From: Paragordius varius
Taxonomy: Eukaryota; Animalia; Nematomorpha
Length of the DNA: 64,000 nucleotides
Direction of reading: 5' to 3'
Assembly: GCA_964247055.1 (NCBI GenBank)
Contig: OZ176057.1
Coordinates: 2,852,001-2,916,000, forward strand
Shown here in pieces: positions 3,820-56,464 of the stretch (position 1 is its first letter; each line of letters opens with the position of its first letter). The notes below the pieces were generated by a model, which was not told the DNA's origin, did not search any database, and worked only from the letters and a program-made list of their open reading frames with translations. Made by a program: the position numbers and the translations under genes.

Positions 3820-3865
3820 ATGATTTTGATAGCCTTATTCCTAGCCCTTAGTAGATTCGTTTCAA
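3820..3865 (+). CDS. Gene 1 exon 1: signal-peptide-like MILIALFLALSRFVS, phase-1 donor
   Basis: ATG ATT TTG ATA GCC ... GTT TCA A|gtttat. Hydrophobic core, followed by an 83-nt intron. Same ATG ATT start and GTT TCA R|gttt end as gene 3 exon 1. Confidence 0.75.
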
Positions 3866-3948: not shown

Positions 3949-3975
3949 AAGCCGAAGGGTATGCGGTAGCTCCAG
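3949..3975 (+). CDS. Gene 1 microexon (27 nt): (K)AEGYAVAP
   Basis: tttttaatacatag|AAGCC...CTCCAG|gtaaaa. GC island, symmetric phase 1, open frame. Confidence 0.8.
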
Positions 3976-4849: not shown

Positions 4850-4897
4850 GATGCTGGCCTGTGTGTGTGCCAGCTCAGCCCCCTACTGTCAAGCCAG
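4850..4897 (+). CDS. Gene 1 exon (48 nt): (G)CWPVCVPAQPPTVKP
   Basis: tatttttag|GATGC...AAGCCAG|gttatt. Symmetric phase 1, C-x3-C plus Pro-rich tail. Confidence 0.85.
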
Positions 4898-5203: not shown

Positions 5204-7682
5204 GTATGACATATAAGCAGTTTATCATTTAAAAATATTTAATTTTAATTATTAATTAAATAACCCTTAAAAGACAGTGTAAAACCTTTACTTGGTATTA
5301 ACTAATTTTAGTAGAGTCCTAAAGTTTTTTCTAATATAATGAATCCCAAATTATAAAACACAGAATAACTTAATTATGACTTCAAAAACTTTTTTATATA
5401 ATATTAATTTACGTTTAGCCCCAAAAACTATATTTTTATTAATATTTTTTTTAAGGGATAAAAACTATGATCCCAAAAAATATTTGAAAAACAGCCACAT
5501 GATATAAAATTTTCAACTTTCCAGGTTTTGGCAAAGATTTATATATAATTGGGTTAAAAAATAATTATATTCTATTTGCCTACTTAATATTTTAACTATA
5601 CAATTATATTTATCCATATGTTTTTATGCGATCGGACGAATTTTCTGGAAATACGGCCCGCGCAGCCCACCCCTGATTAGGCATATAATATAGCATATTT
5701 TTTTCAAAGTTTTTATGTAATTTACAATTAAAAGCACCAGAGAACGTTTTTATATGCCTGTGTCAGATTTAATTACATCACACAATTAATAATGTGTTAT
5801 CTTTTTAATTCTTAACTATTAATTGAAAAATTTATTAATTGGAGAAAACAAATCGTGTTAATTTGCGTCTATACGAACGTATCATATTATATTTTAATTT
5901 AATCAAAAGGAAACAATGACATTTCATAATACTACCTTAGAAATGTTATGTATATATACACTGTGTGCATTTAACTTCAATTTTTTTTATAAGATAGCTT
6001 ATGACCAGTGAATTTTGCCGCCAAAATTAATATTAGTTGGCAATTTATTTTTGGAGTAATAAGAGAAAATAGAAATTGGGCAGGAAGTAAAGAAGATTAA
6101 TTAAGGGTAATTAAAAATATGATAAGACTTGAGAAATAATGATTTATTATCATTTTAGCAGATATTTACAATATATAAATAACCTAAATTCACATATTTA
6201 GGGTTTTTTAAAAAATTCAAATCTAATCTATTAACCTACGTAAAAGACAAAAAAATTTTAGGAAATCATATTTTGTTTAATTATTTACAAGCCATCATTA
6301 TTAAAACCATATTCATATTTTATTCAGTAAAAAAACTTGTAATTTTCTATAAAAATTTTTTAATGAAAACTTAATGCATCATTCTAAAATTATTATTAAT
6401 GTATCACATACCATATTATGAAAAGGACATGACAAAGCATTAAAATTTTGGTCCCTTTAAAAATAGGCTGGTTTTCTTAAAATAAACGCAAAAATCCCGA
6501 GAATTAAAGAACTTCCGATATATATAGTTTCCAAAAAACAACTACCTGGTTCGAAAAAACGATAGTAATTTGCATTGATCTGCAAAACAGTTAAAACTTC
6601 ATTTTTGAATTCAAATAGACGCCGTAGCATATTCCCCTTAGACTTAATAATTTATTAAATAAATTAACTAGTACTATTAAATAATATGTTTATTAACATA
6701 AATTTAAGATCACATCTAATCGTTCGCGCCCCCTCCCAACCCCTAAAATTTTTTTGGTTTCCCTTTTGAAAAACCAGTGTTCTTGCACATCATATTTAAA
6801 ATTATTATCGTATTTCCTTTGTGATGTGATAGAATGGGAAATTTATCGGAGCTCAGAATTTATGTTAATATTTAATAAAATTATTTTAATATGGTTAATA
6901 ATTTAAAAATTTTCTAATATTTTATCAAAAAGATGATTAAAATATCCTCAGAAGCAATCCTTTATTTATTATATAAAAAGATGGCGTTTTCCGCCTTCTC
7001 ATAAAAGATTTGTTATTTTTTATTCAAATCTTACACCAAAGTCCAAATTATTAGGACTTTCTGAAAAGAATGTAAAACTCCTTTGATTTTAGTATAATCT
7101 TATGATACATTTTAACAAATAAAATTTAGTAGACACCGTTTCAACAATTACATTTTTGGATATTGTTTACGCTGAAGTGTGATTGTATTACTATATATGG
7201 AATAATTCAGCAAAAATTATATAAATTTATTATGATATAATATTTCTATTACTACAAGTAATCTTTTCTTATTAACAATACACACATGTTTTTTTAGTTT
7301 CATATCTCATTAAATATTTTTTACTTTAAAATTTAAATTTTAGTTTATATTTAATTTTATTTTTACGTTTGACAAAGATTACTTGTAGTAATCGAAATAT
7401 TATATTATAATAAATTTATATAATTTTTGCTGAATTATTCCATATATAATAATTACATTTTTATTAAAGATAAATGTACGATAAAAAGGGCATTTTTGAT
7501 TTTACTAATACTAAAATGATTTAAACTTTTTAAGCATTTAAACGGCATTTATAATTTCTATATCGAATGTTATACGATTCGATAATATCTGTTTGGCGCC
7601 TACCGTGCAATAAAAAATGTTACACAGACACAACTATAAACTATATTAGTTACAAAAATATATGATAATATATTAAATTTAG

Positions 7683-7760
7683 CATGTCCGAATTCTAGAT
7701 GCAACAGCCAATGCTCTATTAAAGTCCTTATAGATGAATGTGAACAATGTGTTTGTCCCG
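7683..7760 (+). CDS. Gene 1 exon (78 nt): antistasin-like 6-Cys module, copy 1, CPNSRCNSQCSIKVLIDECEQCVCP
   Basis: aaatttag|CATGT...TGTCCCG|gtaaat. Spacing C-x4-C-x3-C-x8-C-x2-C-x-C resembles the antistasin-type pattern (central loop usually ~10). Confidence 0.9.
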
Positions 7761-8379
7761 GTAAATTTATTATTTTTTGGCAAGATGCCATTTATATTGT
7801 AAAATTTTAATTAAGATATTTGATCTGTAGATAATTCATTTTATATGGAAATTTATTTAACCGCATTTTTGATTTATTTATAATTTTATATGAACTGTTT
7901 TTAGATAAATTTCAGTATATTTTATATTTAATCTCTCAAGATACGGGCATGTTTAGAAAAATAATGCATGCTTGCTTATTACCAACGGTGCTTTATAAGC
8001 TAAAAATATATATACGGTCTTTACTCCGCGTCATAGTTTATGATGTATTTTGTCTATTGCCTTTTTTACATGGGTAAACAAACTATTTTAAACTAAATAC
8101 AGTTAGGAAAATAAAAATTAGATATGAGACTAGATTATGTAAATTTAATCCATAATTAAAAAAAATAATGTAAGATAGGGAAAAAGGGGTTTAGTTTCAA
8201 GCATTTGTTGTTTTTTACCTATATGCTACTGTATTACCAATCTGGCAACATTAATATGGATCTAGCAATCGTAAATCCCGGGAGGCATTTTTTACCAAAA
8301 AAAATTATTTACCATTCATTAAATTATTTGGTAAATATAAATGAATTCTGGGCATTTACTTATCAAACTGTCGTTCCCT

Positions 8380-8830
8380 ACTATTGTTGATGCTAAGGTC
8401 GATTCCGACTAACTGCATTGTAAATATATCTTCTCCACTCAAGTCAATCAGATTCGTTTCAATGTACATTTTACACCCATATAGTAATGTGGGGAATACT
8501 ATGGCCTATTAATCTGATTTTGGTTTTTAAATCATGGGATCAAATCTGTCTGTGTTTCGTTTGGTTTTTGAGGTAGATTGTTGTCATTATTTATAATACT
8601 AGCCAAATAGGTGTAGCTGTATACGGTTTCAATCGGATTTTCGTTGAGAATTATTGAGTTGATTGTCTGAGCCGGATTGATTTGTATTACTATTGTTTTT
8701 TGTTTTAAGGTTAATTTTTAATCCGTATTTATTGCACTCGATTGTAATTATGAATTTGCGATAAGATATCGATACTGTTAACGAAAAGCTGTGTCATCAA
8801 TAAACTGAGGTGAGAAACTCACCTTCTAGA
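8380..8830 (-). mobile_element. Decayed LINE RT C-terminal fragment (copy ~12245-12690)
   Basis: Minus-strand ECNKYGLKINLKTK...NENPIETV...PTLLYGC, typical of the non-LTR RT 3' region. Confidence 0.7.
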
Positions 8831-9434
8831 ATGATGTCAGAATTTTTTGGTAAAATTTTTACTATGATCCGAGATAGGCGTTTATAATAATTAGGACCTA
8901 TTATATTATTCTTTTTTAAAAAAAAATGAAAAAAAAGGCGACAAAAAAGTATGATATGAATTTTTTTTCAATTTTACATAATTTAAATAATATTTTTTGT
9001 ATTATGCGCCTAAAAGACTAAAGAAAGCATATTTTTAAATTATGCCTAATATTTTAAATTTTAAACTACCCCAAAAGCTGATGATTGAATTAAATATGAA
9101 AAAACATTGAAAAACAATATTTTATTTATAAATCAATGTTGTAATTATACAATTTATAGTAAAAATTAATTTAGGATTAAAGTATGTTGTCTTTAAAAAA
9201 ATTTTGCTTTGTCTGTATAACTACTAATTTTATTAGATGTTTGAAATATTTCAACAATTATGTTCACTATGTAATCTTCTAACAGTTTAAGACAAACTTA
9301 CAATAATGACAACATTCTACATTAATAATATAATATTAAAATATTATTTTGCCTGACAACCTGAGTTGTTTAGGATCAAATGATGTACAGTAATGCTACC
9401 TATTAGTCCATTTATATATTTTAGTTGTCTAAGG

Positions 9435-9679
9435 CAGGGGTGCGAAACAAATGGCTTGCATTTTCGGAAATAAATCTTGCGGACCGCATGGCATTTACAA
9501 TATCTTATTAAAATTTAAACACAACTCTTTAAAAACTACTATTTATTTTAACATTTTTTGCTAGTTCATTGCCGAATTCGGGAAAAATAACAGAAAATTT
9601 GTTATAAAAATAATTTTAGATTTGAATATCATAAAATTTTATATTTTAAATTTCTTGTGCTGAAGGTTGGCCACCCCTG
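9435..9679. mobile_element. hAT-type MITE (copy 13290-13536)
   Basis: TIR CAGGGGTG/CACCCCTG with near-perfect 8-bp TSD gtctaagg/gtctaaag. Confidence 0.85.
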
Positions 9680-9783
9680 GTCTAAAGGATAATTAAATTT
9701 ACATGTCTGTTGGCATGTATGAGATACTTTACAATATACATTCTAAAATTTTTGTTATTAAAATGCTATTTCATTGCAGACAG

Positions 9784-9795
9784 ACGGCCACACTA
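9784..9795 (+). CDS. Candidate microexon (D)GHT (copy at 13641-13652)
   Basis: ttgcagacag|ACGGCCACACTA|gtagtt. GC island, but the upstream AG (9778-79) would give xRRPH-stop, so boundaries are ambiguous. Confidence 0.3.
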
Positions 9796-10101
9796 GTAGT
9801 TTTAGCATAGAATTTAGCATATTAACATGTGATAGTTAAAAATAATATAAAATGCAAAATCTTGCAAAACAATGAATAAAAATTAAACAAAGTAAGCAAA
9901 ACGGTCTTTATTAAAAAAAGTTTGTCTCTATGTTTTGTATTATCCCTTTTAATTCAAAGACAACTAAACTACTGAAATGGCTACATTATTAACTCTTTCG
10001 TTATATACTTTAACAGCAAATTTGATTTGATTTTATTCCATATGTATTTTATAAAGGGAAATCTTTTATATAAAACAATATTCTTTTATACATGTTACCA
10101 G

Positions 10102-10131
10102 CTCAACCAATGCCACCACCACAACCACCAG
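10102..10131 (+). CDS. Gene 1 Pro-rich microexon (30 nt), copy 1: (A)QPMPPPQPP
   Basis: catgttaccag|CTCAA...CCACCAG|gttttt. Symmetric; all three frames are open, and phase 1 is chosen from neighbouring exons. Confidence 0.8.
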
Positions 10132-10238
10132 GTTTTTATTTAGTTACTTTTTGTTTTTTATAAAAAAAGCACTGTAGTAAAGTATGAGTAAGTATAAATT
10201 TCTAGTTTTTTTAATTATTTCTAGAATCATATATACAG

Positions 10239-10247
10239 ATAGTGTTG
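10239..10247 (+). CDS. Candidate 9-nt microexon (D)SV (copies 14098-14106, 16048-16056)
   Basis: atatacag|ATAGTGTTG|gtgtac. A competing donor 2 nt downstream (gtacgt/gtatgt) gives 11 nt. Identical in three copies while the adjacent sequence has an indel. Confidence 0.45.
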
Positions 10248-10325
10248 GTGTACGTTAATATTATTTAAAATAAATAAAAGTGTATACTGTTTATAAATTT
10301 TTATTACACCTATTCAAACATTTAG

Positions 10326-10343
10326 TAGTATCTAAGACTCGGA
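10326..10343 (+). CDS. Candidate 18-nt microexon (V)VSKTR with NAGNAG acceptor (copies 14185-14202, 16132-16149: VVSKAR)
   Basis: catttag|TAG TATCTAAGACTCGGA|gtaaaa. Both acceptors keep frame; 78-nt upstream intron; one synonymous CGG/CGA difference among copies. Confidence 0.45.
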
Positions 10344-10641
10344 GTAAAAAGATATTTTTAAATTGCAAATAAATCAACCTTTATAATTTAATTAAGTTAC
10401 TTTAATAATATCCTCTTTTTTGTACATTTAGTAAAATAATCAGTAATGTATAGAGTTTTGCAATTATCTTTTACTGCCTTGATACGCCTGAGCTATTTAA
10501 TCAGGAAAAGTAAATTTTGGGACAAATTTTATATGAAGTTTTAGCTATGTAATTAGATGTTTGACGTAAAATATAAACATCTCAAGCTTTTCTATATCAA
10601 TTTTTTCTTTGGTTTTAAAATGTAAATAGGCTAATAAATGG

Positions 10642-11010
10642 TATACCATTTACAGTTCAAATTCACCCTTGAACAATTCAAATTCACCCTTGAACAATTC
10701 AAATTCACCCTTGAACAATTCAAATTCACCCTTGAACAATTCAAATTCACCCTAAAAATAAATTATGAAACTTCGGTCTAATATAACTCATCATAAAAAT
10801 TATATATTTTTATGGCAAAGTTTATTATTTTTTCAGTATTATTTTGATTACATACAAAAATTTTTTTATAAATATAAAAAATATAGGTAATATATAATCT
10901 TAAAAAACACATAATTTATTTTAGGGTGAATTTGAATTGTTTGAAGGTGAATTTGAATTGTTCAAGGAATTTAAATTGTTCAAGGGTGAATTTGAACTGT
11001 AAATGGTATA
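10642..11010. mobile_element. Foldback/MITE with 21-bp subterminal arrays (copies 14509-14845, ~16450-16690, ~37990-38260)
   Basis: TIR TATACCATTTACAGTTCAAATTCACCC with tandem TTCAAATTCACCCTTGAACAA units. Confidence 0.8.
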
Positions 11011-11529
11011 TTAAGAATTAATAAATAGTTTATTATAAAAAGGTTAATTATATTTAAGCAGCAAATTTGGATATTTATTGATTAAGCTTATTCAATTTTG
11101 GATTATAGAACTTATAATCTTTAAAAGATTGATACCCTTTTTATCTAATACAGATTAATGTCTCACTAAATATTTTTTACTTTAAAATTTAAATTTTAGT
11201 TTATATTTAATTTATTTTTACGTTTGACAAAGATTACTTGTAGTAATCGAAATATTATATTATAATAAATTTATATAATTTTTGCTGAATTATTCCATAT
11301 ATAATAATTACATTTTTATTAAAGATAAATGTACGATAAAAAGGGCATTTTTGATTTTACTAATAATAAAATGATTTAAACTTTTTTAGCATTTTAACGG
11401 CATTCTATATCGAATGTTATACGATTCAATAATATCTGTTTGGCGCGTACCGTGCAATAAAAAATGTTACACAGACACAACTATAAACTATATTAGTTAC
11501 AAAAATATATGATAATATATTAAATTTAG

Positions 11530-11607
11530 TATGTCCAAAACCTAGATGCAACAGCCAATGCTCTGTTAAAGTCATTGTAAGGGGATGTGTACATTGTGTT
11601 TGTCCCG
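11530..11607 (+). CDS. Gene 1 exon (78 nt): antistasin-like module, copy 2, CPKPRCNSQCSVKVIVRGCVHCVCP
   Basis: aaatttag|TATGT...TGTCCCG|gtaaat. All six Cys are kept relative to copy 1, with 13 nt differences. Confidence 0.9.
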
Positions 11608-13964
11608 GTAAATTTATTATTTTTTGGCAAGATGCCATTTATATTGTAAAATTTTAATTAAGATATTTGATCTGTAGATAATTCATTTTATATGGAAATT
11701 TATTTAACCGCATTTTTGATTTATTTATTATTTTATATGAACTGTTTTTAGATAAATTTCAGTATATTTTATATTTAATCTCTCAAGATACGGGCATGTT
11801 TAGAAAAATAGTGCATGCTTGCTTATTACCAACGGTGCTTTATAAGCTAAAAATATATGTACGGTCCTTACTCCGCGTCATAGTTTAAAATGTATTTTGT
11901 CTATATTGCCTTTTTTACATGGGTAAACAAACTATTTTAAACTAAATACAGTTAGGAAAATAAAAATCAGATATGAGACTAGATTATGTAAATTTAATCC
12001 ATAATTAAAAAAAATTAATGTAAGATAGGGAAAAAGGGGTTTAGTTTCAAGCATTTGTTGTTTTTTACCTATATGCTACTGTATTACCAATCTGCCAACA
12101 TTAATATGGATCTAGCAATCGTAAATCCCGGGAGGCATTTTTTACCAAAAAAAATTTATTTACCATTCATTTAATTATTTGGTAAATATAAATGGATTTT
12201 GGGCATTTAATTATTTAATCATACTGTAATTCCCTACTATTGTTGTTGTTGCTAAGGTCGATTCCGACTAACTGCATTGTAAATATATCTTCTCCACTCA
12301 AGTCAATCAGATTCGTTTCAATGTACATTTTACACCCATATAGTAATGTGGGGAATACTGTGGCATATTAATCTGATTTTGGTTTTTAAATCATGGGATC
12401 AAATCTGGCTGTGTTTCGTTTGGTTTTTAAGGTAGATTGTTGTCATTATTTATAATATTAGCCAAATAGGTGTAGCTGTCTGTATACGGTTTCAATCGGA
12501 TTTTCGTTGAGAATTATTGAGTTGATTGTCTGAGCCGGATTGATTTGTATTACTATTGTTTTTGTTTTAAGGTTAATTTTTAATCCGTATTTATTGCACT
12601 CGATTGTAATTAAGAATTTGCGATAAGATATCGATACTGTTAACAAAAAGCTGTGTCATCAATAAATGGAGGTGAGAAACTCACCTTCTACAATGATGTC
12701 AGAATTTTTTGGTAAAATTTTTACTATGATCCGAGATAGGCGTTAAAAATATTAGGACCTATTATATTATTCTTTTTTAAAAAAAATGAAAAAAAAGGCG
12801 ACAAAAAAGTTTAATATGAATTTTTTTTTCAATTTTACATAATTTAAATAATATTTTTTGTATTATGCGCCTAGACTAAAGAAAGCATATTTTTAAATTG
12901 TGCCTAATATTTTAAATTTTAAACTACCCCAAAAGCTGATGATTGAATTAAATATGAAAAAACATTAAAAAACAATATTTAATTATATATCAATGTTGTA
13001 ATTATACAAATTATAGTAAAAATTAATTTAGGATTAAAGTATGTTTTCTTTAAAAAAAATTTTGCTTTGTCTGTATAACTACTAAATTTATTAGATGTTT
13101 GAAATATATCAACAATTATGTTCACTATGTAATCTTTTAACAGTTTAAGACATTACAATAATGACAACATTCTACATTAATAATATAATATTAAAATATT
13201 ATTTTGCCTTACAACCTGAGTTGTTTAGGATCAAATGATGTACAGTAATGCTACCTATTAGTCCATTTATATATTTTAGTTGTCTAAGGCAGGGGTGTCC
13301 GAAACAAATGGCTTGCATTTTCGGAAATAAATCTTGCGGACCGCATGGCATTTGCAATATCTTTTTAAAATTTAAACATAACTCTTTAAAAACTACTATT
13401 TATTTTAACATTTTTTGCTAGTTCATTGCCGAATTCGGGAAAAATAACAAAAAATTTGTTATAAAAATAATTTTAGATTTGGATATCATAAAATTTTATA
13501 TTTTAAATTTCTTGTGCTGAAGGTTGGCCACCCCTGGTCTAAAGGATAATTAAATTTACATGTCTGTTGGCATGTATGAGATACTTTACAATATACATTC
13601 TAAAATTTTTGTTATTAAAATGCTATTTCATTGCAGACAGACGGCCACACTAGTAGTTTTAGCATAGAATTTAGCATATTAACATATGATAGTTAAAAAT
13701 AATATAAAATGCAAAATCTTGCAAAACAATGAATAAAAATTAAACAAAGTGAGATAAGCAAAACGGTCTTTATTAAAAAAATGTTTGTCTCTATGTTTTG
13801 TATTATCCCTTTTAATTCAAAGACAACTAAACTACTGAAATGGCTACATTATTAACTCTTTCGTTATATACTTTATCAGCAAATTTGATTTGATTTTATT
13901 CCATATGTATTTTATAAAGGGAAATCTTTTATATAAAACAATATTCTTTTATACATGTTACCAG

Positions 13965-13994
13965 CTCAACCAATGCCACCACCACAACCACCAG
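13965..13994 (+). CDS. Gene 1 Pro-rich microexon, copy 2
   Basis: Identical to 10102-10131 with intact splice sites. Confidence 0.75.
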
Positions 13995-15643
13995 GTTTTT
14001 ATTTAGTTACTTTTTGTTTTTTATAAAAAAAGCACTGTAGTAAAGTATGAGTAAGTATAAATTTCTAGTTTTTTTTAATTATTTCTAGAATATACAGATA
14101 GTGTTGGTGTATGTTAAAATTATTTAAAATAAATAAAGGTGTATACTGTTTATGAATTTTTATTACACCTATTCAAACATTTAGTAGTATCTAAGGCTCG
14201 AAGTAAAAAGATATTTTTAAATTGCAAATAAATCAACCTTTATAATTTAATTACGTTACTTTAATAATATTCTCTTTGTTTGTACATTTAGTAAAATAAT
14301 CAGTAATGTATAGAGTTTTGCAATTATCTTTTACTGCCTTGATACGCCTGAGCTATATAATCAGGAAAAGTAAATTTTGGGACAAATTTTATATGAAGTT
14401 TTAGCTATGTAATTAGATGTTTGACGTAAAATATAAACATTATCTCAAACTTTTCTATAACAATTTTTTCTTTGGAATTATTTAAAATGTAAATAGGCTA
14501 ATAAATGGTATACCATTTACAGTTCAAATTCACCCTTGAACAATTCAAATTCACCCTTGAACAATTCGAATTCACCCTAAAAATTAGTTATGAAACTTCG
14601 GGCTAATATAACTATTTTTATGGAAAAGTTTATTATTTTTTCAGTATTATTTTGATTACATACAAAATTTATTTTTTTATAAATATAAAAAATATAGGTA
14701 ATATATAATCTTAAAAAACACATAATTTATTTTAGGGTCAATTTGAATTGTTCGAAGGTGAATTTGAATTGTTCAAGGGTTAATTTGAATTGTTTAAGGG
14801 TGAATTTGAATTGTTTGAGGGTGAATTTGAACTGTAAATGGTATATTATGAATTAATAAATAATTTAATGTAAAAAGGCTAATTATATTTAAGCAGCAAA
14901 ATTTGGATATTTATTGATTGAGCTTTCTCAATTTTGGATTATAAAACTTAAAATCTTTAAAAGATTGATACCCTTTTTATCTAATACAGATTAATGTTTT
15001 GTTATATTTTAACCAACTTTCAACAGCAGTTTTTATCAACTTAAGTTCTAGGGTTTAAAACTACCCGAAGAGGAGATCTTCCAAAAATATAAATAACCAA
15101 ATCATACAGGGGTTTCTATAAAATCTCAGTTCAAAGAGGGCGTTTTTCTTTCTCGCAAACACAAAAGACAAAATATTTTATGAAACTATATTAAAAAAAA
15201 TTTTTAATTAAAAGAACATATATAAAAATAACTAAAAATATTTATTATTTTTTCATTTTTTTGTTTCTCGGTTTATGTTAATATGAAATTTTATATAAGC
15301 GGAAATTATAAAGTATAATTAAATGAAAATAAAATTTACAAAAAAACCAAAATCCGTCACCAGTAAAAATATTAATATGTGTTAAAACAAACATTTTACA
15401 GGGATTTGTAAAGATTTTTCGTTGATATTCCAGTACTTTTAAATCATATTTTGCACTTATATAATATTTAATTCCCACTCACGTAAGATTCCAAAAGTAT
15501 AAATTTTTTATACACTCAGAAACAAGATAAAAAAAATGACAAAATAAAAAACATATGTTTTATTTTTATTGGATATATAAGTTTTTTTACTGAATAAAAT
15601 TTGTATGTGATTTTGTATATAATTAAAAAAATTATTTTGACAC

Positions 15644-15663
15644 TAGGGTTAGGGTTAGGGTTA
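15644..15663 (+). repeat. Interstitial telomere-like (TTAGGG)3 patch
   Basis: tagggttagggttagggtta, absent from the paralogous position at ~17424. Confidence 0.7.
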
Positions 15664-15915
15664 AGAAACCCCAGACTAAATTTAATTTAGAATTTTTTAA
15701 AAAACTACTGAAAGAAAGGGTCCCAATTTATATTTATGCTTCTATCCTAAATTATATCCCTTTTAATTCAAAGACAACTCAACTACTGAAATGGCAACAT
15801 TATTAACTCTTTCGTTATATACTTTATCAACAAATTAGATTTGATTTTATTCCATATGTATTTTATAAGGGGAAATCTTTTATATAAAACAATATTCTTT
15901 TATACATGTTACCAG

Positions 15916-15945
15916 CTCAACCAATGCCACCACCACAACCACCAG
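15916..15945 (+). CDS. Gene 1 Pro-rich microexon, copy 3
   Basis: Identical to 10102-10131 with intact splice sites. Confidence 0.7.
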
Positions 15946-18095
15946 GTTTTTATTTAATTACTTTTTGCTTTTTATAAAAAAAGCACTGTAGTAAAGTATG
16001 AGTAAGTATAAATTTCTAGTTTTTTTAATTATTTCTAGAATATACAGATAGTGTTGGTGTATGTTAAAATTATTTAAAATAAATAAAGGTTACTGTTTAT
16101 AAATTTTTATTACACCTATTCAAACATTTAGTAGTATCTAAGGCTCGGAGTAAAAAGATATTTTTAAATTGCAAATAAATCAACCTTTATAATTTAATTA
16201 CGTTACTTTAATTATATCCTCTTTGTTTGTACATTTAGTAAAATAATCAGTAATGTATAGAGTTTTGCAATTATCTTTTACTGCCTTGATACGCCTGAGC
16301 TAATTAAGGAAAAGTAAATTTTGGGACAAATTTTATATGAAATTTTAGCTATGTAATTAGATGTTTGACGTAAAATATAAACATTATCTCAAACTTTTCT
16401 ATATCAATTTTTTCTTTGGAATTATTTAAAATGCAAATAGGCTAATAAATTACAGTTCAAATTCACCCTAAACAATTCAAATTCACACTAAAAATTAGTT
16501 ATGAAACTTCGGTCTAATATAACTCATCATCAAAATTAAATATATTTTTATGGCAAAGTTTATTATTTTTTCAGTATTATTTTTATTACATACAAAATTT
16601 CTTTATTTATAAATATAAAAAATATAGGTAATATATAATCTTAAAAAACACATAATTTATTATACGGTGAATTTGAATTGTTCGAAGAGCAAAATTTGGA
16701 TATTTATTGATTGGGCTTTCTCAATTTTGGATTATAGAACTTATAATCTTTAAAAGATTGATAACCTTTTTATCTAATACAAATTAATGTTTTGTTATAT
16801 TTAAACCAACTTTCAACAGCAGTTTTTATTAACTTAAGTTTTAGGGTCTAAAACTACCCGAAGAGGAGATCTTCCAAAAATATAAATAACCAAATCATAC
16901 AGGGGTTTCTATAAAATCTCAGTTCAAAGAGGGCGTTTTTCTTTCTCGCAAACACAAAAGACAAAATATTTTATGAAACTATATTAAAAAAAATTTTTAA
17001 TTAAAAGAACATATATAAAAATAACTAAAAATATTTATTATTTTTTCATTTTTTTGTTTCTCGGTTTATGTTAATATGAAATTTTATATAAGCGGAAATT
17101 ATAAAGTATAATTAAATGAAAATAAAATTTACAAAAAAACCAAAATCCGTCACCAGTAAAAATATTAATATGTGTTAAAACAAACATTTTACAGGGATTT
17201 GTAAAGATTTTTCGTTGATATTCCAGTACTTTTAAATCATATTTTGCACTTATATAATATTTGATTCTCACTAACGTAAGATTCCATAAGTATAAATTTT
17301 TTATAACAAGATGAAAAAAAATGACAAAATAAAAACAATATGTTTTATTTTTAATTCGATATATAAGTTTTTTTTACTGAATAAAATTTGTATGTGATTT
17401 TATATAATTAAAAAAATTATTTCACTTAAATTCAAGTGGGTATCTAAAAACCCCAGACTAAATTTAATTTAGAATTTTTAAAAAACTACTAAACGGTCCC
17501 AATTTATATTTATGCTTTTATCCTAAATTATATTAATATGCCAAAATATCTAAAAAAATGTTTTGAAAAAAAAAGGTCCATGTCAAACTACTTCGACGCA
17601 ATTATTTACAAAATTTTTGCAAAATATCGTCTTCATTTACAAGGGTAAAATTTAAGCTAATTTTTTATTTAATTTACATCCAATATTGATAGAAATAAAG
17701 AAGTTATTTTTGTATTATTTTAAAATTTTACCATATCAAATATGTCACGTTGACGAAATTTCTACCGTTCGGTTTTAGCTTAATATAAGTGATAAAGTAT
17801 TTTTAAATAAATTTTTTTATATCTTTCGGTTAATTAATGTAATATAAGTGCAAATATTGCCATGGTTTCGATTCCTTCCATAATTTTTAATATTTAATTT
17901 TAAACAGGCCAGAGGTATCCGACTACCCCAATTTGAATCGAAGGACTGAAATGAATGTGTTGTATCAAAGTGTTAATAGTTTCATAAAAAATGTTTTGTT
18001 TTTTGCGTGTCTTAAAAGAAAAACGCTATCTTTTAAACTGAGATTTTTTTGAAACCTTAACTATAATTTTAGGGGATTTATATATTGAAAATATT

Positions 18096-18455: not shown

Positions 18456-18488
18456 TTGTAGTATGTTACCATCCTGGACAATGTTCAA
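18456..18488 (+). CDS. Gene 1 microexon (33 nt): (x)VVCYHPGQCS
   Basis: cttttttgccacag|TTGTA...TGTTCAA|gtataa. Homologous to gene 3 exon 57464 with mostly third-position differences. Confidence 0.85.
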
Positions 18489-18557: not shown

Positions 18558-18581
18558 ATGTTCCTTGTAACCCACCATGCT
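18558..18581 (+). CDS. Gene 1 microexon (24 nt): (N)VPCNPPC
   Basis: ttgttattag|ATGTT...CCATGCT|gtaatt. Symmetric, 69-nt upstream intron. Confidence 0.8.
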
Positions 18582-24441: not shown

Positions 24442-27400
24442 GGCCAGTTTTCTAATGATCTGTAAAATCATTAGTTGTACACAAGGGCATGTGATACGTA
24501 AAAAATTGCCTCAATAAACCATGAAGTATAATAATATGAATATGAAAGAACACTAAAACCTTATCAACATCTCAAATAACAATAATAATTCAACTTATAA
24601 TAATTATTTTGATAATATTTCCCATTTACACTTTTATACACTATATTTTTTGATATATACTTTGAATAAAAATTACCAAAATAATTATGAAAATAAATAA
24701 TACCGTTAGTAATAATAATAAAACAGTTCTGAAATTTGCCACATGAAATGTGGGTACCCTAGTTAACAAAATATTAATGATAACAAACACTCTTAGCCAT
24801 AACAATATAGATATATGTTGCATCCAAGAGGCCAGAATGAAAGGAGAGGGATTGAAAAACTTAGACAATTATACATTATTCCATAAAGGAAATGACAAGG
24901 GACAAAGTGGTGTTGCGATTTTCATTAAAAACATCTATCGTGATAATATAATTGATGTAATAAGACATAATCCAAGAATGATTCAAATAAAAATATTGAT
25001 GAATGATAATGTAATAAATATAGTTTCAACTTGCGCACCACAATCTGATCTAAGTGAAACATCAAAAAACGAATATTGGGAAGCCCTCTATGATTTGATG
25101 AACAAAACTTCTTCTAGCGAACAAACTTTTGTTGGTGGTGATTTTAATTGCCATATAAATAATGATAGTAATGAATACCATGGCGTGCATGGTGGAAATG
25201 GCGTTCGAGCCCTCGATAAGATGGGCGAGAGTTTGCTAGACTTTTGCATTGCAAATCAACTCATAGTCGCAAATACCCATTTTAAGAAAAAAACCAACAG
25301 CATATAACATATAATTCCGGTGACCACTCATCTATGATAGACTTCATATTAATTCCAAAAAACATTAGGAAACATCTAACAAACATCAAAACTTACTATC
25401 ACTCCTCTTACCAACACAAGCTAATAACAGCATTTCTAATCATTGAGAAAATCCGAAGACCGCATTCCAACATCAAAAAATAAATATAGCAAAGTTAAAG
25501 GATTCAAAATTATTAACCGATTATACCAAAAACACAGAGTTACATCCCGAACGAAACAATGTTGAAACTCTATGGAAAAATTTTAAAAGCACAATTCTAA
25601 CAGCTGCCAAAAAACATTGTGGTTTTACTAAACCAATGAGGCAACGGAAAAGCTGGTGGTGGAAAAATGAAATAAAACCATTGTTGCGTGAAAAAGGCGA
25701 AGCATATAAAAAATGGAAAAGTTCCAAAAATAATGATAATAAAAAAGTTTATAATGATAAAAAACGAGAGGTCCAAAAGGCCATTCGACGCGCTATGAAT
25801 CCGTTAAAATCGCTGAAAGTTTAGAAAAAGACTTTAAAAACCAAACGATTTTTAAAAGACTCAAAAACCTTAACAATAGTAATAAAGATGTTAAAACCAT
25901 AAAATGTATTAAAGATAATAATGATAATATAATAACGAATCCCTCGAAAGTCAAAGAAATTTGGAAAACGAACTTAGAAAAACAACTCAACCAAGTAAAC
26001 CCGACCAAACACCAGTAGCTGGTCCCATACAAGATATCACCATAGATGAAGTCACAACTGCAATCAATATTTTAGTAACAAAGCTCCTGGCCCAAGCAGC
26101 CTTTCAGTCGACCTCATTCGACCCATCAAAAACACTGCAGAGTATCTAACAAAACTCTTTAACCAAATAATAATTACAAACCAAACTCCCAGCGATTGGA
26201 AGAACAGCATAATAATCCCCATTTATAAAAATAAAGGCGATCGACTAAAAACATCGTCCTACCGACCTTTAAAACTTCTGGAACACACACTGAAAATATT
26301 CGAAAATATATTGGAAAACAGGCTGAGAAAACATATAAACATAGATTCGAATCAGTTTGCATTCCGTCCAAACAGTAGCACAATAGATCCCTTGTTTATC
26401 CTAAGACGCTTACAAGAAAAATATCTGGAAAAGAAACAAAAGCTATACCATGTCTTTGTAGATCTGGAACGTGCCTTTGACCAACCACGCACCACAATTC
26501 AATGGGCACTACGTAAAAAGGGAATAGAAGAACATACTATACAAATCTTATTATTACTCTATAAAAATACAAAAACCAAGGTTAGAACCAATATCGGCAA
26601 TATAAGCAATTTCCCAACCAATGCTGGACTACATCAGGGTTCAGTTCTAAGTCCACTCCTTCTTATAACTATAATGGATGCGGCAACGCAAGACATAAGA
26701 ACTGAATGCCCTTGGGAAATGTTATTCGCCAACGACCTCGTGATAACGACACGATCATGGGATCAAATGGTAAATACATATACCAAGTGGAAGAAATGCC
26801 TTGAACAATATGGAATGATTATAAACGCCACAAAAACAAAAATAATGATAACGGGTGAAAGTGAAACACCCAGATACCCCTGTTCCATTTGCAGTAAGGA
26901 AGTACGTTCAAATTCCATTAAATGCATATCATGTCAAATGTGGGTACACAAAAAGTGCTCTAAAATAAAAGGAAAGTTAACAAACGTAATATAAATGTTT
27001 AAATTGCTTAGCCCAAGCAATAATAATTTTAATCGACCAAAGCTACTTAACATTGATGGACATGACATCGAATTGGTTGACTCTTTCGTATACCTAGGAG
27101 ACGTCATTACATCTCAGGGAGGCCCACAAAAGGCTATCAAAAGAAAAATACAACAAGGTTGGATAAAATATAATCAGTTAAAATATGTTTTCCAAAACAA
27201 AAATGTTAACAATCGTAATAAATGGTATATTACAAGGTAGGAATAAGACCTGCTCTTACCTATGGTTCTGAAACCTAGGCATTAAACAAAATAAATCAAA
27301 CAAAACTCCTAACCAGTGAGAACCGAATACTCAAAAGCTGCTTTCGCACACCAGAATTACCAATTTTCATTAAATAAACCGATAAAATTGATTATATAAT

Positions 27401-27657
27401 TCAAACTAACAGATTGCGTCTATACGGTCATACTCAGAGAAGAGACGCCACCCATCCGTTAAAAACTGTTGAAAACATTAATGTTGATGGCAATAGAAGA
27501 AAGGGACGACCACTCTTTTCCTATAATGATAATATAAAAATGGACTTAAATCAACGTAGCCTTTCCACAGAACAATGTAAAGATCGTAACTTATGGAGGA
27601 AACTACTTTGTGGATACAAAACTCCGAATATGGAGTCCTAAAATTATCCATCCATCC
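24389..27657 (+). mobile_element. Near-full-length decayed RTE-clade LINE (APE endonuclease + RT, PHD-like Cys/His insert, (TCCA)n tail)
   Basis: KFAT*NVGTL, CIQEAR, GGDFN, YRPLKLL, GLHQGSVLSP, MLFANDL (ADD decayed), FVYLG, LYGH, GRP. Stops and frameshifts throughout. Confidence 0.92.
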
Positions 27658-37718: not shown

Positions 37719-39589
37719 TTTACTTTTTTAGCCAAGAGAAAATAATACATCAATACAAATAAAACTTTTTCTGACAAAAGGATGTCATCATATATTATAT
37801 TCATTTTAAAAATTTTAAAAACTGGCCTCTATGGCTCAGGTCAAAAATAATATTTTAATAATTTCTTATATCGAATTTGAATGATGTTTCTTATATCCAA
37901 TGTTTTAATACAAATAATAATAAATGTATGCTTCATTTATATAATTTTAAAAATAAATTAATAAATATATACTGGATAATGATCAATAAATACCATTTAC
38001 AGTTCAAATTCACCCTAAAAATAAATTTTCTTTTTCGAATTAATATAACTCATTTTAATATGAATATCATTATGGCAATGTTTATTATTTTTTCAGTATT
38101 ATTTTAATTTTAAACAAAACTTTATTTTTAAAAATATATAAAAATATAGGTAATTTTTAATCTTAAAAAACATATAATTTATTTGAATTGTTCGAGGATG
38201 TTGAATTGTTCAAGGGTGAATATGAATTTTAAGAGTGAGTTTGAATTGTAAATGGTATAATACGTGAATTCAAATTTCGAGTATTATGTTCCCTTCATGC
38301 GTTGAGTTAATACAATATGATTAGAGATTTTACAGTAAAAATTAAAATTATAGGGACAAAAACCTAAAAATAAAAATACAAATATTTTTTTAAAAGACAA
38401 CCCTAATTATTCAAACCTTAATTATTCCTACATAAACTATTTGATTACATTTTTAAATGATTGAGTGTAATAATTTATATATCTAATCCCTATTTAGCAA
38501 CCCAAAACAATAGGAGAAGTTTTTGTTAGATTCTTAAAGCGTTTTTATACCGTTTATGCTTAAAAATGCATGAGAAGTACGCTTCAACAAAATTTTGAAG
38601 TAGTATGCATTTTTGAAAATTTTATTTGATGCCATAACTAACTTCATATTAAAAATTTTTATCCTGAAATCTCATCATTTTTGTGTTTATCTTAAAAAAG
38701 CCTCCCATTTTAGAATGGGGCAAATAATCTAGACCTTGTAGCAGGCCACTAAAATTAAAAAAAATATAATAACGTTGTTATGCTATTTACACATAGTATT
38801 TACAGTCATGTATCCTTTATTTTATCGAAAATTTACATTTTTTTTGTATGGGTATAAATATTTGGTAAAGAATGGAAAAACAAGAGCTCTATGGTATTAA
38901 CCATATCATTAAAAGAAGTGTGGGGGAAGGGTGTCGGAAATCTTTGGTAAAAATGAAGATCTTAATAAAGGGGAATGTAATATTTTTGTTAATTTTTTAG
39001 CAAAATTATTACTATTTTTTTCAAAAAAATTATTTTAAGCAAAACAAATAAACCACGTATATATTAATTTTTATATATAGGTAAAAAATATTATTATAAT
39101 TTATTTAATAGATATCACAATGAACAAAACAAAAATTATAACGGACAAAATATAAGGATGTAATCACTTCTATATTAAGGGAAAACATAGGGAATGAATA
39201 TTTATTATATAGTGTTCATAAAAATATATTATTGAACTGAATGCGTTTCATCCAAAAATGCTCTATTTTAGGAAATAAAATAATCATATGAATAACCATT
39301 TTACCACTATTTAACCCTATTGAATGTTTTTATTCTATGATAATTGTTTAAAAAAAGCAAGATATATCTGGAAATTATTTTCATATCGTACTGTGCGATC
39401 AAAGAAAAACAAAATCGTCTCTGATACTTACAATAAATGATGGTTAAAAATGTTTTCATTCACCAACCTTAGTTTTTTTTAAAAGCAACATCAATTAAAA
39501 CTCATTTTGAAAAATCATAATATTTTGAAGAGATTTTGTTTTTCTTTCGTCGCAAAATCTTTTGATTCTGCAATATTGTTCTTAGAATG

Positions 39590-39990
39590 TAGTGCATCTT
39601 GGTTTATTTCATAATAAAATTTTAATTCGTTAACAAAAAATTCAATAGGATTAAGTTGGGACAAATAAGGTGGTAAATATATAAGCTTGTTTCTTAAATT
39701 ACCTACAATAAAACATTTATGAATGGGTGCGTTGTCGCAAATACAAACGCATTTTGTGGTAACATGGCCAAAGCCTCCAAAAATGGCTTAAACGTGTCGC
39801 CATTGAACGCTCCCTGTTTGATGCTCTAATTAACATTACCCTGTATGGCAATCATACACAACAAAGAGACGTTTTTACATGTAATAAAATAATATATCTT
39901 TATTAAAGCCTTTTACGATAGGTGCCTGTCCTGACGGTGCCCGACCGAATATATTTTTTGCTATCAATGAAAACCCTGACTCATCTATTT
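39590..39990 (-). mobile_element. IS630/Tc1-like DDE transposase relic
   Basis: DESGF...GRAPSG; ICDNAPIH; LPPYLSQLNPIEFF. Confidence 0.8.
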
Positions 39991-45013: not shown

Positions 45014-48000
45014 ATCTACATGGTTATTCTATGTAAATTAGATAAAAGGAAAAAATGTTATTATATGATAAATAAAATATTAAAAAATTTTTAAAATAAT
45101 AATGTTTATTCCATTTTTATGGCACATTATTAAACTTAATTTTTAAAAATAAACCTTATGCTTTTAAGGAAGTTGGTACCAGAACCAGGCTGGTTCCTAA
45201 AAATTTTAAAATGGCACCGGAGTGGTTAAGTTTTGGAACTAAACTGGGGTGGTTACTAGGAAAACGGAACCGCAACCGGGTTGATTCCAACTTAACCAAA
45301 CGGTTCTCAAAATACTCAGAAACCGGGTTCCGATTCCATCAAGGATCTACACAAATGGCTTTCGGCCGCATATAAAATCTCGGAGAGCGTGTTGTTTCTT
45401 TTCTAATTATATAATATTTTCGTTAACTCCCCTATGACGGATATTGTAAAATCCATAAACGAACAGCGTGACACTATAGATATTATTTAATTTAATATCG
45501 CTCTTCAACAAAAACTAACTGCATCGAGTTGTGTTAATTTGTGAATGTGTTCATCGAACAACAAACTTTAGGCGGCATTACTTTAAATTCATTGTTTTAG
45601 CCGCATTTTTGACTCAAATAATCCAGCGTGCTGCATTCGTAATATATATGTGAATTTAAAAGGAAAATATTTAAACATAAAAGTGGAATTTGATTCGTGC
45701 CAATCGGATAGATTTATTTAAAATTTGTTCAATAAATATCGATTATATTATATTTTGTGAGCATATTTCTATAATTTATGGATTTTTAATTTTTTCCCAC
45801 AAAAATTTGACCGCATACAGACCGCGTTGGGTAAATTTTCGTACAAAAAACAATTTTAACATAAATTTAAAAAACAAATAATTTATTTCAAGGTCTGAGT
45901 TAATAGAAATATTTAGTATGACCGAAATGTATGGATAAAGTGTTTTTTAATAAGCGTTTTTCCTATTCCATCATGCTTACCCAGTGACGTACCGAGCATT
46001 TGCGGCTCCCGGGATATAAAACTCTTATGCCACCCTCCCTCATCTTGATAGCCAATAAAACAATTTAGTATAAAAATACGTTGCAACCTAAACACCTTAG
46101 ATACAGCCTAGTCATATAAATTAAATATTATATATGAAACTTTATTCATTCGAATTATGTACAAATTCTATAATATGGAATTTATATATATATAAATAAT
46201 ACACTTTGATTTTCGTTGCATATATTGAATTGATCTTATGATAATGGCGAACAATAAAGATTCAAAAAATAATTGTATATATAGGCAAATTTTACAATAC
46301 AGATTTTAACGGAATTAAAATTTATGACAATATAATCCGTAAAATATTATGTTATAAATGAGATTTTACTACTTGGAAAGGAAAGAGGCAACTAAGAGAC
46401 TTTTGATATTGCATAATTATCTATCAATTATGTTATTAAAATCTCTCATATTTTATTCTTTTTCCACACTACCATGTTAAGTCATTCAAACGATCTTGAC
46501 CCAACGTCGATCGCATATATGTTAAAATTAATTTTAATTTGCTGAATGACATTTCACAACTAGCGATTGACGTTGAAATAAAAAGTATTTGAAGTGCAAC
46601 CCTTAAATTGGGAAACACATCTTCGCCGTTTGAAATTATATAGTTAAGAGTATCGGAGTTTTAGGTTTGACATCCTTTCGACTTAGGAATATCCTAAATC
46701 AAAAACTTCTATAAAAAGATTTGTTCCATTAAAGTATTGTATTCGCCTATAGATTTACAATTTTTTTTAAATCATTATTGTTATTGTTATTACGTGTCAA
46801 TAAAGTTTTGATATCTAACAAAAATTCAAATTTAGAATTCACATCTCATAGAGGATCGATTTTCCATTTCCATTCGCAATTTATTCAACACGTGTTTCAT
46901 AACACGAGATATTTCACTTTCTGCAGAAAAAATCACTCCACTGATTCTCCTGGGAATTTTGGCTTAGCACGGGTAGATATAGATATACATACATCCCAGT
47001 TTTCACATACAAATTTAGCTTTTTTATGGCTTCTTCTCAAAGTTGATTCGTAATATCTATTAATTATAGTTAAGTATTCAGGTCCTTAACACTTTGATTC
47101 ATTTGGGGTATCTATTACTTCAAACAATATTTGAATTGATATTTTTGGAAAATTACTGAAGGAAAAGGTTCCAATTATTAAGCCAAATATATAAATAAAA
47201 TTTAGTTTTGGAAAAAAAGTACCGTATAAACTATTTAGACGCCATTTTTATTTTACAAAATTTTTGCAAAATATGGTGTTTATTTGATTCTAAGCCTAAT
47301 AAGTTTAATTTATTAATAAAATCACATTTAACATTGATAAAAACAGAAAAAGTGGTATATTTTGCACTATTTTTGTATTTTGCTTATGGACACATGTCAT
47401 CTTTGATAAATTTTTACCTTTCGGTTTTGCCCTTGAATGAGTAATATCAAGTATTTTTGAATGAATATTTTATTATATTTTGGTTCATAAATGTTGTATA
47501 AGTGCAAACTTTTGCCATGGTTTAAATTTTTTCTATATATTTTGAAAAATTTATATTTAAACAAGCCTGGGGTATCTAACTACCTTAATTTGAATTGAAG
47601 GACTGAAATGAATGCGTTGCATCCAAGTGTTAGATGCTTTTTTATATTAATAATGATAACTTACCTTTATAGATGATATAATCTTGGGATGTAAATAAAT
47701 AAAATTGGGTTTTAAAATCGAATATGATTAATAAAGAGAAAAAATATTATTTTACATATATTTAATTAAAAAAAATCATTTCGGACCCCCTAAATAACGG
47801 CGCCCGGGGCATGATGCACCCACTTGCCCTCCCCCCTCAGTACGCCACTGTGCCTACCATAAAATAAGCATTATTTTAAATTGTTGCATAAAATTACCTT
47901 ATATTTGTAAATTTTTTTGCTAAAGAAACAGACATTTTAGAAGAACAAATATCTGTTTTGCTCTTTATATGAAGTTTATGATATATAATATTATACTTAG

Positions 48001-48149
48001 AATGAAGCATTCACAGCAAAAATTATAATATTACATATAAAACGTAAAATAACAAATATTGTTTTCTAAAAGACAACCATAGTTTTCAAATCTATTTTTT
48101 TTAGTATAAATCATTGTTAAAAATTATAAAGTATGACATAGAGATGTAT

Positions 48150-51100
48150 ATTGGTCTTATTTCAACCTGGGTGTCTTTCTCGTTTTCTTTTTCTTTGCTT
48201 GGTTCCTCCCCCACTTCCCGATTATTAGTTGTAATCCCTTCATCTGTTTGGTTTATCGTTAAATTATCCTCCTCCTCAACGCCGTTCTCGACTCCGGTCG
48301 GCCGTAATTGATCCGCATGCTTGCGAAGTGTTCGATTTCCATCTTTAACCGTGTACGAGAGTACCCCTGTTCTCTCCAAAATTGAACCTTTTCTCCACCC
48401 TGAATTGATTTCATTCTTTATGTACACTTCTTCGTCCGGTCTAAAAACTTGATTGGGAATTATGTCGTCCTCTAATTGTTGTGCGGGTGTTTCCCTAACC
48501 CAAGAGAAGGGGGTATTAATATGTCTTTTCAGAAATAAATTATACGGGCACTCTTTTGTGGCGCTATGTACGGCGGAGCGATAACCCCATAACACTTGGT
48601 TTATTTTTTTGTCAGGAGTCAGCTTAGAATCCGTTAACGATTTATAGTGTGCTTTTAAGGTGTAAATGACCCGTTCCACCAGCCCATTTGTTCGTGGATG
48701 ATAGGGGGCGCTAGTGACAGGTTTGATGTTTGCTCGTTGCAAGGTATCTTTAAAATCTTTCGATGCAAAATATGATGCATTATCGGTAACTATCATTCGG
48801 GGAAACCCGTACCTAACACACAAATTTCCAACCAATGTAGTATGTTTGCAGAGTTAACAGTTCTTAGCAATTCGACTTCAACCCATCTGGAGCTACTATC
48901 GATAGCTACTAACCAATACAACCCATCCATAGGACCGGCAATATCAAGATGTATCCTTTCCCAGATACTCGTATTAAAATTCCATTTGTATGTTGGATTA
49001 CTTTTTATGTTACTCCGGTTTAACTGACACCCCATACAAGATCTCACATAACTTTCAATATCTTGGTTTATACCTGGTCAATAAACCCTAGCCTTGGCAG
49101 ACTCTTTCATTACATTAGCCCCCGAATGTCCAACATGCAAAAATTTTAACGTTTCATTTCGCAACGTCCTGGGAATAAACAGACGATCGCCCCAATACAG
49201 CATCCCATATGATTGTTGTATTTCGTTTCTTATACTCAATATCGAATTTAAAATTGGAGCTAACCAATCATTATGATGTAGAGCCGATTTTAATGCCATC
49301 AAAAACTCATCCCGTAAAGTATTTTTTCATGCGCTGTGCGCTTAAGTTGTCAGTTGTTAGAAAGTTGATTTGCCTGGGTTGCTCCTCAACTTCCTCAGTC
49401 GGTTCTTCATACGGTAGACGAGATAACCAATCCGCTAAATTTTCCGAACCATTAATATATTGTATAGTAAAATTATAATCGGCTCTTCTGAGTATCCATC
49501 TTACTAATCTACTATTGTTAATATTACTTAGATCTCTCTTAAAGCCAAACAACTTGATCAGGGGTTTATGATCGGTTAATAATACGAACTTTCTGCCATA
49601 CACAAACATTTTAAAATTTTCTAGCGCATATAAAATTGCCCTTGCTTCTTTTTCAATTACCGAGAAATATTGTTCTGTCTTCGCACATTTTCGAGACGCA
49701 AAAGCTATCGGCCGTTTTCCCTCACTTGTCATATGTGATAAAACTGCTCCGAATCCGTCATTCGATGCATCTGTTTCCAACACTAACGGAAGGTTCGGAT
49801 TAAACATTATTAGACATAATGCATTACTCACCAACAGTTTAGCTTTATCAAAAACCCTCTCTTCTTTTGTCGATCAACACCATTTCTTAGAACCTGTAAG
49901 CGAATGTAAGTCCGCGATTGTAGCATGCAAAGATGGAATAAAACGAGCGTGAAAATTTAACATTCCCAAAAAAGACCGAAGTGATGTTTTATTGGTAGGT
50001 GTAGGACAATTCAAAATTGCTTTTACTTTTTCGTTATCAGGTTTAATTCCTTTGTCTGAAATTATATATCCTAAGTATGACACTGAGGAACGAGCTAATT
50101 GTATTTTATCCTTTTTTAATTTCAAACCCACAGCAGCTAATTTGTTCAACACTTTTTCTAAATTATGCTTATGCTCCCTTACCTTTGTTCCACTAACAAT
50201 TACATCATCTAAGTAAACCGCTGTACCTGGACAATCTTTTAATCATCCATAATTTGTTGAAATATCGTGGGTGCACTAGATATTCCAAATGGCAGTCTCT
50301 TAAACCGAAAAAGGCCTATATGTGAACTAAACGTGAGTAAATGTTGATAATCTTGGTGTATCGGCATTTGCCAGTAAGCTTCTTTTAGATCTAAGGTCGT
50401 AAAAACTTTTCCTTGCCCGATTTTAAACACTAACTGATCAAACGTTGGAATCAGATGATCTACAGGAACCAGACTTGGGTTTAAAGTAACTCTAAAATCA
50501 CCACATATGCGAATATCATTATCATTCTTTTTAACTATCACCAACGGAGTTACCCAGTCAATTCGTGTTTGCGAGGGGTTTATGGACTCTATAATACCCA
50601 GACTTTCAAGCCTCTTTAATTCATTCTCCACCTTAGACTGAAGCGGAATAGGTACCCTCCTGGCTGCAAATCTTTTGGGGATACTCCCTTTTTTGAGAAA
50701 CAACTTGATGGGTGGTCCCGTGTAACACCCCATACCCTCACAAAACATTTAAATTTATTCAATTCCACGTAATTAATATTTTTTACACATACCGCCTCTG
50801 ACTGCATTCAAAGCTTTTCATCCATGGTAACCCAAAAATGTTACCCCAATCATCCCTAGTAACCATACATTCCAACTGTTTGACCATACCATTCCATTTC
50901 ACATCTACCACACATTGTCCCATCACCTCTACACCTTGCTGGTTGAACCCAACTATTGGACCCGCGGGTGTTAAGGTCGGCCTCCCAATCTCCATCCACG
51001 TGCTCTTCCCAATCAATGATATTTGAGCTCCGGTATCGTACAACATCCTCACCCAATGGCCATTCAGACTTGCTTGCGTTCGGGCTTCATTATTATTATT

Positions 51101-56176: not shown

Positions 56177-56228
56177 ATGATTAGACTATCCCTTTTACTG
56201 TGCTTTGCAATTATTGGCTGTGTTTCAG
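56177..56228 (+). CDS. Gene 3 exon 1: signal peptide MIRLSLLLCFAIIGCVS
   Basis: ATG ATT AGA ... GTT TCA G|gtttct, followed by a 98-nt intron. Confidence 0.85.
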
Positions 56229-56326
56229 GTTTCTTTTTCCTAATATTTTTATGCGTAAACTATTATGTAGAATAAATTTCTATGATAACATAACTAACAT
56301 TTTTATAATAATTTTTCTAATCAAAG

Positions 56327-56368
56327 GAGATAATGGGAGTGGTAAACCAGTCGATTCACCAAAACCAG
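56327..56368 (+). CDS. Gene 3 exon (42 nt): (G)DNGSGKPVDSPKP
   Basis: ctaac branch motif; tcaaag|GAGAT...AAACCAG|gtttaa. Confidence 0.85.
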
Positions 56369-56446
56369 GTTTAATATAAATCGCAATTAACTATTTTTCA
56401 TCATTTTTTATCATTATTACAATTACAAATTTTTTAAACTTAATAG

Positions 56447-56464
56447 CAATCCCTGAAGGATCAT
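56447..56464 (+). CDS. Gene 3 microexon (18 nt): (A)IPEGS
   Basis: ttaatag|CAATCCCTGAAGGATCAT|gtaagt, a consensus donor. Confidence 0.85.

Follow-up and report, generated by a model that had tools for sequence, protein, structure and literature searches.

The 64,000-nucleotide (nt) stretch of Paragordius varius contig OZ176057.1 examined here (positions 2,852,001 to 2,916,000 of the forward strand; the window) carries a putative gene of very short exons in which one exon, encoding a module with six cysteines, is present twice within a nested tandem repeat spanning ~7.3-17.5 kb. The window has a G+C content of 26%, contains no N, and much of it is transposon-derived. The two exon copies, termed A and B, and the repeat units around them are, in window coordinates:

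7683-7760, + strand, six-Cys exon copy A: 78 nt, phase 1-1, Cys spacing 4-3-8-2-1, net charge -1
11530-11607, + strand, six-Cys exon copy B: 78 nt, phase 1-1, Cys frame as in copy A, net charge +4
about 7305-11160, + strand, tandem unit A: ~3.86 kb, with one six-Cys exon and one Pro-rich linker exon; delimited by self-BLAST, repeat spacing and MAFFT alignment, with bounds refined by eye
about 11161-14996, + strand, tandem unit B: adjoins unit A directly, without spacer or N run
14997-15754, + strand, spacer S1: 758 nt, repeat-derived, with a second copy in S2
15755-16790, + strand, partial unit C: unit tail only, without the six-Cys exon
16790-17530, + strand, spacer S2: second copy of S1

Repeat families in the A/B region are spaced 3835-3863 nt apart, and a global MAFFT alignment of units A and B gave 3674 matches, 99 mismatches and 31 gap events. 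The unit tail common to A, B and C shows substitution distances of 2.9% (A-B), 3.5% (A-C) and 3.1% (B-C), which is near a star, and the two spacers differ at 22 of 763 aligned positions. Because three copies of the unit tail and two copies of the spacer lie at similar distances from one another, we take the duplication at this locus to be real.

The repeat contains two further elements. Three TTAGGG-type telomere-like repeat units lie in S1 at 15643-15660 (+) and are absent from S2, where chance predicts 0 such units. The duplicated unit also carries a foldback or MITE-like (miniature inverted-repeat transposable element) sequence at 10642-11010, again at about 14481-14850, and in degraded form at about 16430-16690, with a related piece outside the repeat at 37999-38249. 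This element has 44-nt terminal inverted repeats that are 98% complementary, and both arms consist of 21-nt tandem subrepeats whose number differs between units A and B.

Both six-Cys exon copies are bounded by AG and GTAAAT and, read in phase 1, give 25 residues with six cysteines. Between the copies 13 of the 78 nt differ, 8 by transition and 5 by transversion, while in the rest of the two units 86 of 3695 aligned sites differ (2.3%), with 31 indel events. The exon excess is about seven-fold (Fisher p = 6.8e-8; Poisson p = 7e-8). Among all 78-column windows of the alignment the exon is the most divergent, with the next-best window holding 8 differences, and non-exon divergence reaches 4-6% in some 200-nt bins of the unit. 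Upstream of the exon 82 nt are identical, with the nearest mismatch at 83 nt, and downstream the first ~120 nt are identical, with 1 mismatch in 200 nt. The differing patch occupies exon nt 1-65 between these identical flanks, so that its extent tracks the coding boundaries and not some arbitrary tract.

The introns immediately beside the exon were compared separately. Between 7583-7960 and 11430-11810 there are 2 mismatches in 300 nt, where ~7 would be expected at 2.3%, a marginal deficit. Splicing signals might account for this low divergence, as might a local conversion event that left the exon untouched.

At the codon level the copies differ by 10 residues, nine in frame and one in the split first codon (Ala/Val), and by a single synonymous change (CCG/CCA). 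All six Cys codons are identical, and the splice dinucleotides and phase are kept in both copies. By the Nei-Gojobori method the exon has 60.0 non-synonymous sites with 10.8 differences and 15.0 synonymous sites with 1.2, giving a non-synonymous divergence (dN) of 0.207 and a synonymous divergence (dS) of 0.082. Compared with a non-coding divergence of 0.024, dN is about 9-fold higher (p = 2e-7) and dS is compatible (p = 0.30). The signal lies in dN measured against intron divergence, rather than in dN/dS alone. When 12 substitutions were placed at random in simulation without creating a stop, all six cysteines were kept in only 5% of trials. Of the changed residues, two are among the 4 of the Cys1-Cys2 loop, five are among the 8 of the Cys3-Cys4 loop, and two make up the whole Cys4-Cys5 loop. 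No change touches the Cys2-Cys3 segment or the C-terminal end, and the net charge of the module shifts between -1 in copy A and +4 in copy B. An identical codon is used at 15 of the 16 residues conserved between the copies, which implies that the exon copies are as young as their introns.

A first-pass annotation of this DNA had reported the positions of the two exons, the 13 differences, the 10 residue changes with one synonymous CCG/CCA change, and the six intact cysteines; all of these were recounted and found correct, as were the change from IDECEQ to VRGCVH and the near-identity of the flanks (82 nt upstream, about one site in ~200 nt downstream). Its estimate of ~1-2% intron divergence is low for the unit as a whole, at 2.3% with many indels. 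The central observation, that the exon diverges far faster than its introns on a fixed six-Cys frame, stood up in the Fisher test and in the comparison of dN with non-coding DNA. Its interpretation as accelerated protein evolution draws support from that second comparison, though not from dN/dS taken on its own.

The exon pair lies in a gene model whose product appears to be a small secreted protein rich in cysteine and proline. The model was inferred from sequence with exons read one by one. In addition to the two six-Cys exons, the proposed exons are:

3820-3865, + strand, putative first exon: ATG and a signal-peptide-like hydrophobic stretch of 15 codons, with phase 1 at its end; read by eye
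3949-3975, + strand, putative exon: 27 nt, phase 1; read by eye
4850-4897, + strand, putative exon: 48 nt, phase 1, with a two-Cys motif followed by a Pro-rich stretch, at a G+C peak
10102-10131, + strand, putative Pro-rich linker exon of unit A: 30 nt, phase 1-1, flanked by AG and GTTTTT
13965-13994, + strand, putative Pro-rich linker exon of unit B
15916-15945, + strand, putative third copy of the Pro-rich linker exon, in partial unit C
18456-18488, + strand, putative exon: 33 nt, phase 1, Cys/Pro with a two-Cys motif; resembles an exon at 57464-57523 in a second gene
18558-18581, + strand, putative exon: 24 nt, phase 1, Cys/Pro; the last exon placed

After the first exon the proposed exons would measure 27, 48, 78, 30, 78, 30, 30, 33 and 24 nt, all of them phase 1-1 and multiples of three, and would be separated by introns of about 0.07 to 2.8 kb. 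The Pro-rich linker exon is identical in all three copies.

The second gene, of like build, lies at about 56177-61284 (+) and possibly continues beyond. Its first exon is signal-peptide-like, and the symmetric phase-1 micro-exons after it measure 42, 18, 60, 54 and 24 nt and carry two-Cys motifs and Pro-rich stretches; the six-Cys module is not visible in the part seen. Paralogy of the two genes is suggested by motif resemblance only; BLAST between them registered no match, the exons being too short.

We searched for relatives of the six-Cys module by sequence and by structure. The first-pass annotation had called the exon antistasin-like. The general Cys spacing of antistasin-type modules, which looked similar to that of the module, provided a lead only, and membership in that family is not supported. 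In hmmscan searches of Pfam-A, both 25-residue modules matched 0 families at E <= 10. In phmmer searches of all PDB chains (E <= 10) neither module matched an antistasin, hirustasin or bdellastasin chain; the sole match, of copy A to a fibrinogen alpha fragment (E = 0.36), is unrelated and was attributed to chance, and copy B had none. The antistasin-like label is therefore not supported by these searches. The same annotation had held the position equivalent to the antistasin reactive site, after Cys2, to be unchanged between the copies, a statement left without basis because there is no family alignment by which to place a reactive site.

All exons encode fewer than 30 residues, so the large protein searches used stop-free frames that include intron-coded residues, which limits their sensitivity. 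A profile search of 1.84 billion representative proteins with the two stop-free 56-residue frames around the exons found no real relative. Two matches from this search were judged spurious, one aligning only to the intron-coded flank and the other being a 6252-residue repeat protein without the Cys frame. Scanning metagenomes with the two-module alignment gave 92 pattern matches, 0 of which were confirmed, and a metagenome scan with exact 21-mers gave two chance matches without module context. Looking through ORF-called contigs with the reverse-strand open reading frame (ORF) that covers the exon gave no candidate. When the 56-residue stop-free frame containing the exon was modelled with AlphaFold2, the mean predicted local distance difference test score (pLDDT) was 54, too poor for a fold search. 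At the sensitivity reached, the module is an orphan.

The most likely explanation of these observations, which we hold with moderate confidence, is an intragenic tandem duplication after which diversifying (positive) selection acted on the loops of a disulfide-rich secreted module. In this scenario a 3.85-kb segment would have been duplicated in tandem within a gene of very short symmetric phase-1 exons, ordered as a signal-peptide-like exon, small Cys motifs, Pro-rich linkers and the 25-residue six-Cys module. The event would have given the gene one more six-Cys module and one more linker without breaking the frame. Non-coding DNA and synonymous sites would then have drifted by about 2-8%, and the six-Cys loops would have taken about 11 amino-acid-changing substitutions as the cysteines and the Cys2-Cys3 segment stayed fixed, leaving one module mildly acidic and the other basic. 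Selection would have acted where the loops of a secreted, disulfide-locked binding module are exposed. Three parts of this account, namely the duplication, the excess rate and the retained Cys frame, can be read directly from the aligned copies. Secretion of the product, the presence of both exons in the messenger RNA (mRNA), the disulfide fold and the binding role are features that we infer.

Several points weigh against this explanation. The exon dN/dS of 2.5 is not significant alone (Fisher p = 0.44) because there are only 15 synonymous sites. The differences are clustered, with 4 within 5 nt and 3 within 5 nt, and this clustering may mean that fewer, complex mutational events were involved. 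The comparison covers a single pair of exons, set against each other rather than against an outgroup. Several of the proposed donors (GTTTTT, GTTATT and GTATAA) match the usual donor consensus weakly. Finally, the searches for relatives found no homologue from which a fold or role of the module could be drawn.

Clustering is also what non-allelic gene conversion would produce, if a short stretch of some related six-Cys exon located elsewhere in the genome had replaced the sequence of one copy and the differences had come in with it. The differences indeed form one compact 65-nt patch with sharp edges, and the similarly built second gene at about 56.2-61.3 kb indicates that a gene family exists. 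However, no third copy or donor was found in the 64 kb by Cys pattern, k-mers, blastn or tblastn, and the converted tract would have to start within a base of the acceptor and carry no intron difference. Import from an old paralog is made less likely by the shared codons at 15 of 16 conserved residues and the ~1 synonymous difference, since an old donor should differ at synonymous sites; the codon sharing has P = 0.003 if codon identity to an old paralog is 0.6. The first-pass annotation had itself named conversion from a more distant paralog as the event that could overturn its reading, and the codon evidence, together with the confinement of the patch to the exon between identical flanking DNA, reduces that prospect. 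A donor could still lie beyond the 64 kb, and overall we consider conversion improbable. An assembly artefact, in which both haplotypes of one heterozygous individual were placed end to end as A and B and the exon differences are allelic, possibly under balancing selection, also has a low probability in our estimate. Such an artefact would fit the direct adjacency of units A and B, and 2.3% substitution with many indels is within the heterozygosity of many invertebrates; copy number is not readable from a single window. Yet the junction has no N gap, the duplicated segment keeps the reading frame, and the third unit-tail copy and the duplicated spacer lie at similar distances (2.9-3.5%), and more than two copies cannot be two haplotypes.

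The remaining alternative is mutation without selection, in the form of a few complex multi-nucleotide events or a hypermutable patch in an unexpressed or decaying exon. The 13 differing sites are clustered and reduce to 9 events when differences <=2 nt apart are merged, and the ratio of non-synonymous to synonymous changes is about 11:1, as random mutation gives with 60:15 sites. Against this, the excess holds when counted as events (9 against 1.6 expected, p = 5e-5), both copies are still open and retain every Cys codon and both splice sites, the patch falls on the coding segment, and neutral decay cannot outrun the flanking rate. We regard this alternative as quite improbable. Relaxed constraint or pseudo-exon decay as the sole cause was rejected, as it cannot exceed the neutral rate. 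Sequencing error was also rejected because 13 clustered differences leave both frames open.

The exon pair has parallels in several known systems. Comparing the divergence of an exon with that of its flanking introns is an established test, and fast exons are enriched in duplications (PMC3906575). The six-Cys pair shows the same signature by the same test, more exon differences than in the flanking introns, and differs from accelerated exon evolution in duplicated genes in that the comparison is between two exons of one gene and concerns a single pair. Antistasin-type modules, as in leech antistasin, hirustasin and bdellastasin, are likewise ~25-residue six-Cys modules repeated in tandem in a secreted protein; the difference is that neither copy here has a Pfam or PDB sequence match to them. 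Conotoxins, snake phospholipases A2 and other venom peptides also vary in their loops around a constant cysteine scaffold, a likeness of pattern that does not by itself tie the exon pair to venom, immunity or host interaction. Tandem exon duplication can also give mutually exclusive alternative exons, and the two exons here are similarly of equal length and phase and diverged in sequence. The unit at this locus differs from such exons in that it holds both module and linker, and both modules could be included without a frame break.

The architecture of the gene is closest to that of the micro-exon genes (MEGs) of schistosomes, which have symmetric exons of 3-81 bp, introns of up to 5 kb and secreted products (doi 10.1101/2023.06.21.545858), and which show high dN/dS, lineage-specific duplication and transposon enrichment (PMC4350168). 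As in MEGs, a first exon, here signal-peptide-like as judged by eye, would be followed by many very short symmetric exons between long repeat-laden introns, and the proposed exons in both genes of the window, 18-78 nt long, are all multiples of three. MEGs differ in being reported only from Schistosomatidae, and the modules here are cysteine-framework domains with no known protein match. The resemblance would be one of gene architecture and evolutionary mode, not homology. A broader reading would place here a micro-exon-gene-like system outside schistosomes, a lineage-specific secreted family built from tiny phase-1 exons in which an orphan six-Cys module was multiplied by exon-pair duplication and selected to opposite surface charge, as an independently evolved route to variant secreted proteins. 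We offer this as a tentative possibility and lean against it.

In this pair an exon has outpaced its introns since a recent duplication within the gene, with its cysteine frame conserved; the statistical backing is strong and we regard the case as real. Evolution of this kind is well known and opens no long-standing question. If the model holds, the locus would offer a compact, datable case of a new protein module arising and specialising, with the surrounding DNA as a neutral clock. It would also extend to another lineage a micro-exon gene style known mainly from schistosomes, and would point to an orphan family of cysteine-rich modules worth looking for in the secretions of the organism.

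Rfam and tRNA scans found no RNA genes. The further features recognised in the window are transposons. A LINE-type (long interspersed nuclear element) non-LTR retrotransposon (LTR, long terminal repeat) at 24747-27638 (+) has endonuclease, reverse-transcriptase and PHD-like zinc-finger regions. Its coding sequence runs over about eight stop-free frames with ~7 interruptions, mostly frame changes and at least one in-frame stop, and its best relatives are 45% identical. A match within this element to a shrimp-virus envelope family was below the Pfam threshold (16 bits against a cut-off of 24) and was set aside as chance. The internal region of a Ty3/gypsy-type LTR retrotransposon at 48104-51928 (-) encodes, in this order, gag-like, aspartic protease, reverse transcriptase, RNase H and integrase regions. 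It too has ~7 interruptions, of which about three are in-frame stops and about four are frame changes, and one of the latter is possibly the natural gag-pol boundary; its best relatives are <=48% identical. For the reverse transcriptase and RNase H sequences of the window the best identities are 45-48%, with named matches in Hydractinia, Branchiostoma and Mercenaria. Fragments of DNA transposases lie at 39518-39787 (-) and 46472-46660 (-), with a Tc1/mariner-type DDE_3 domain and a hAT C-terminal dimerisation domain.

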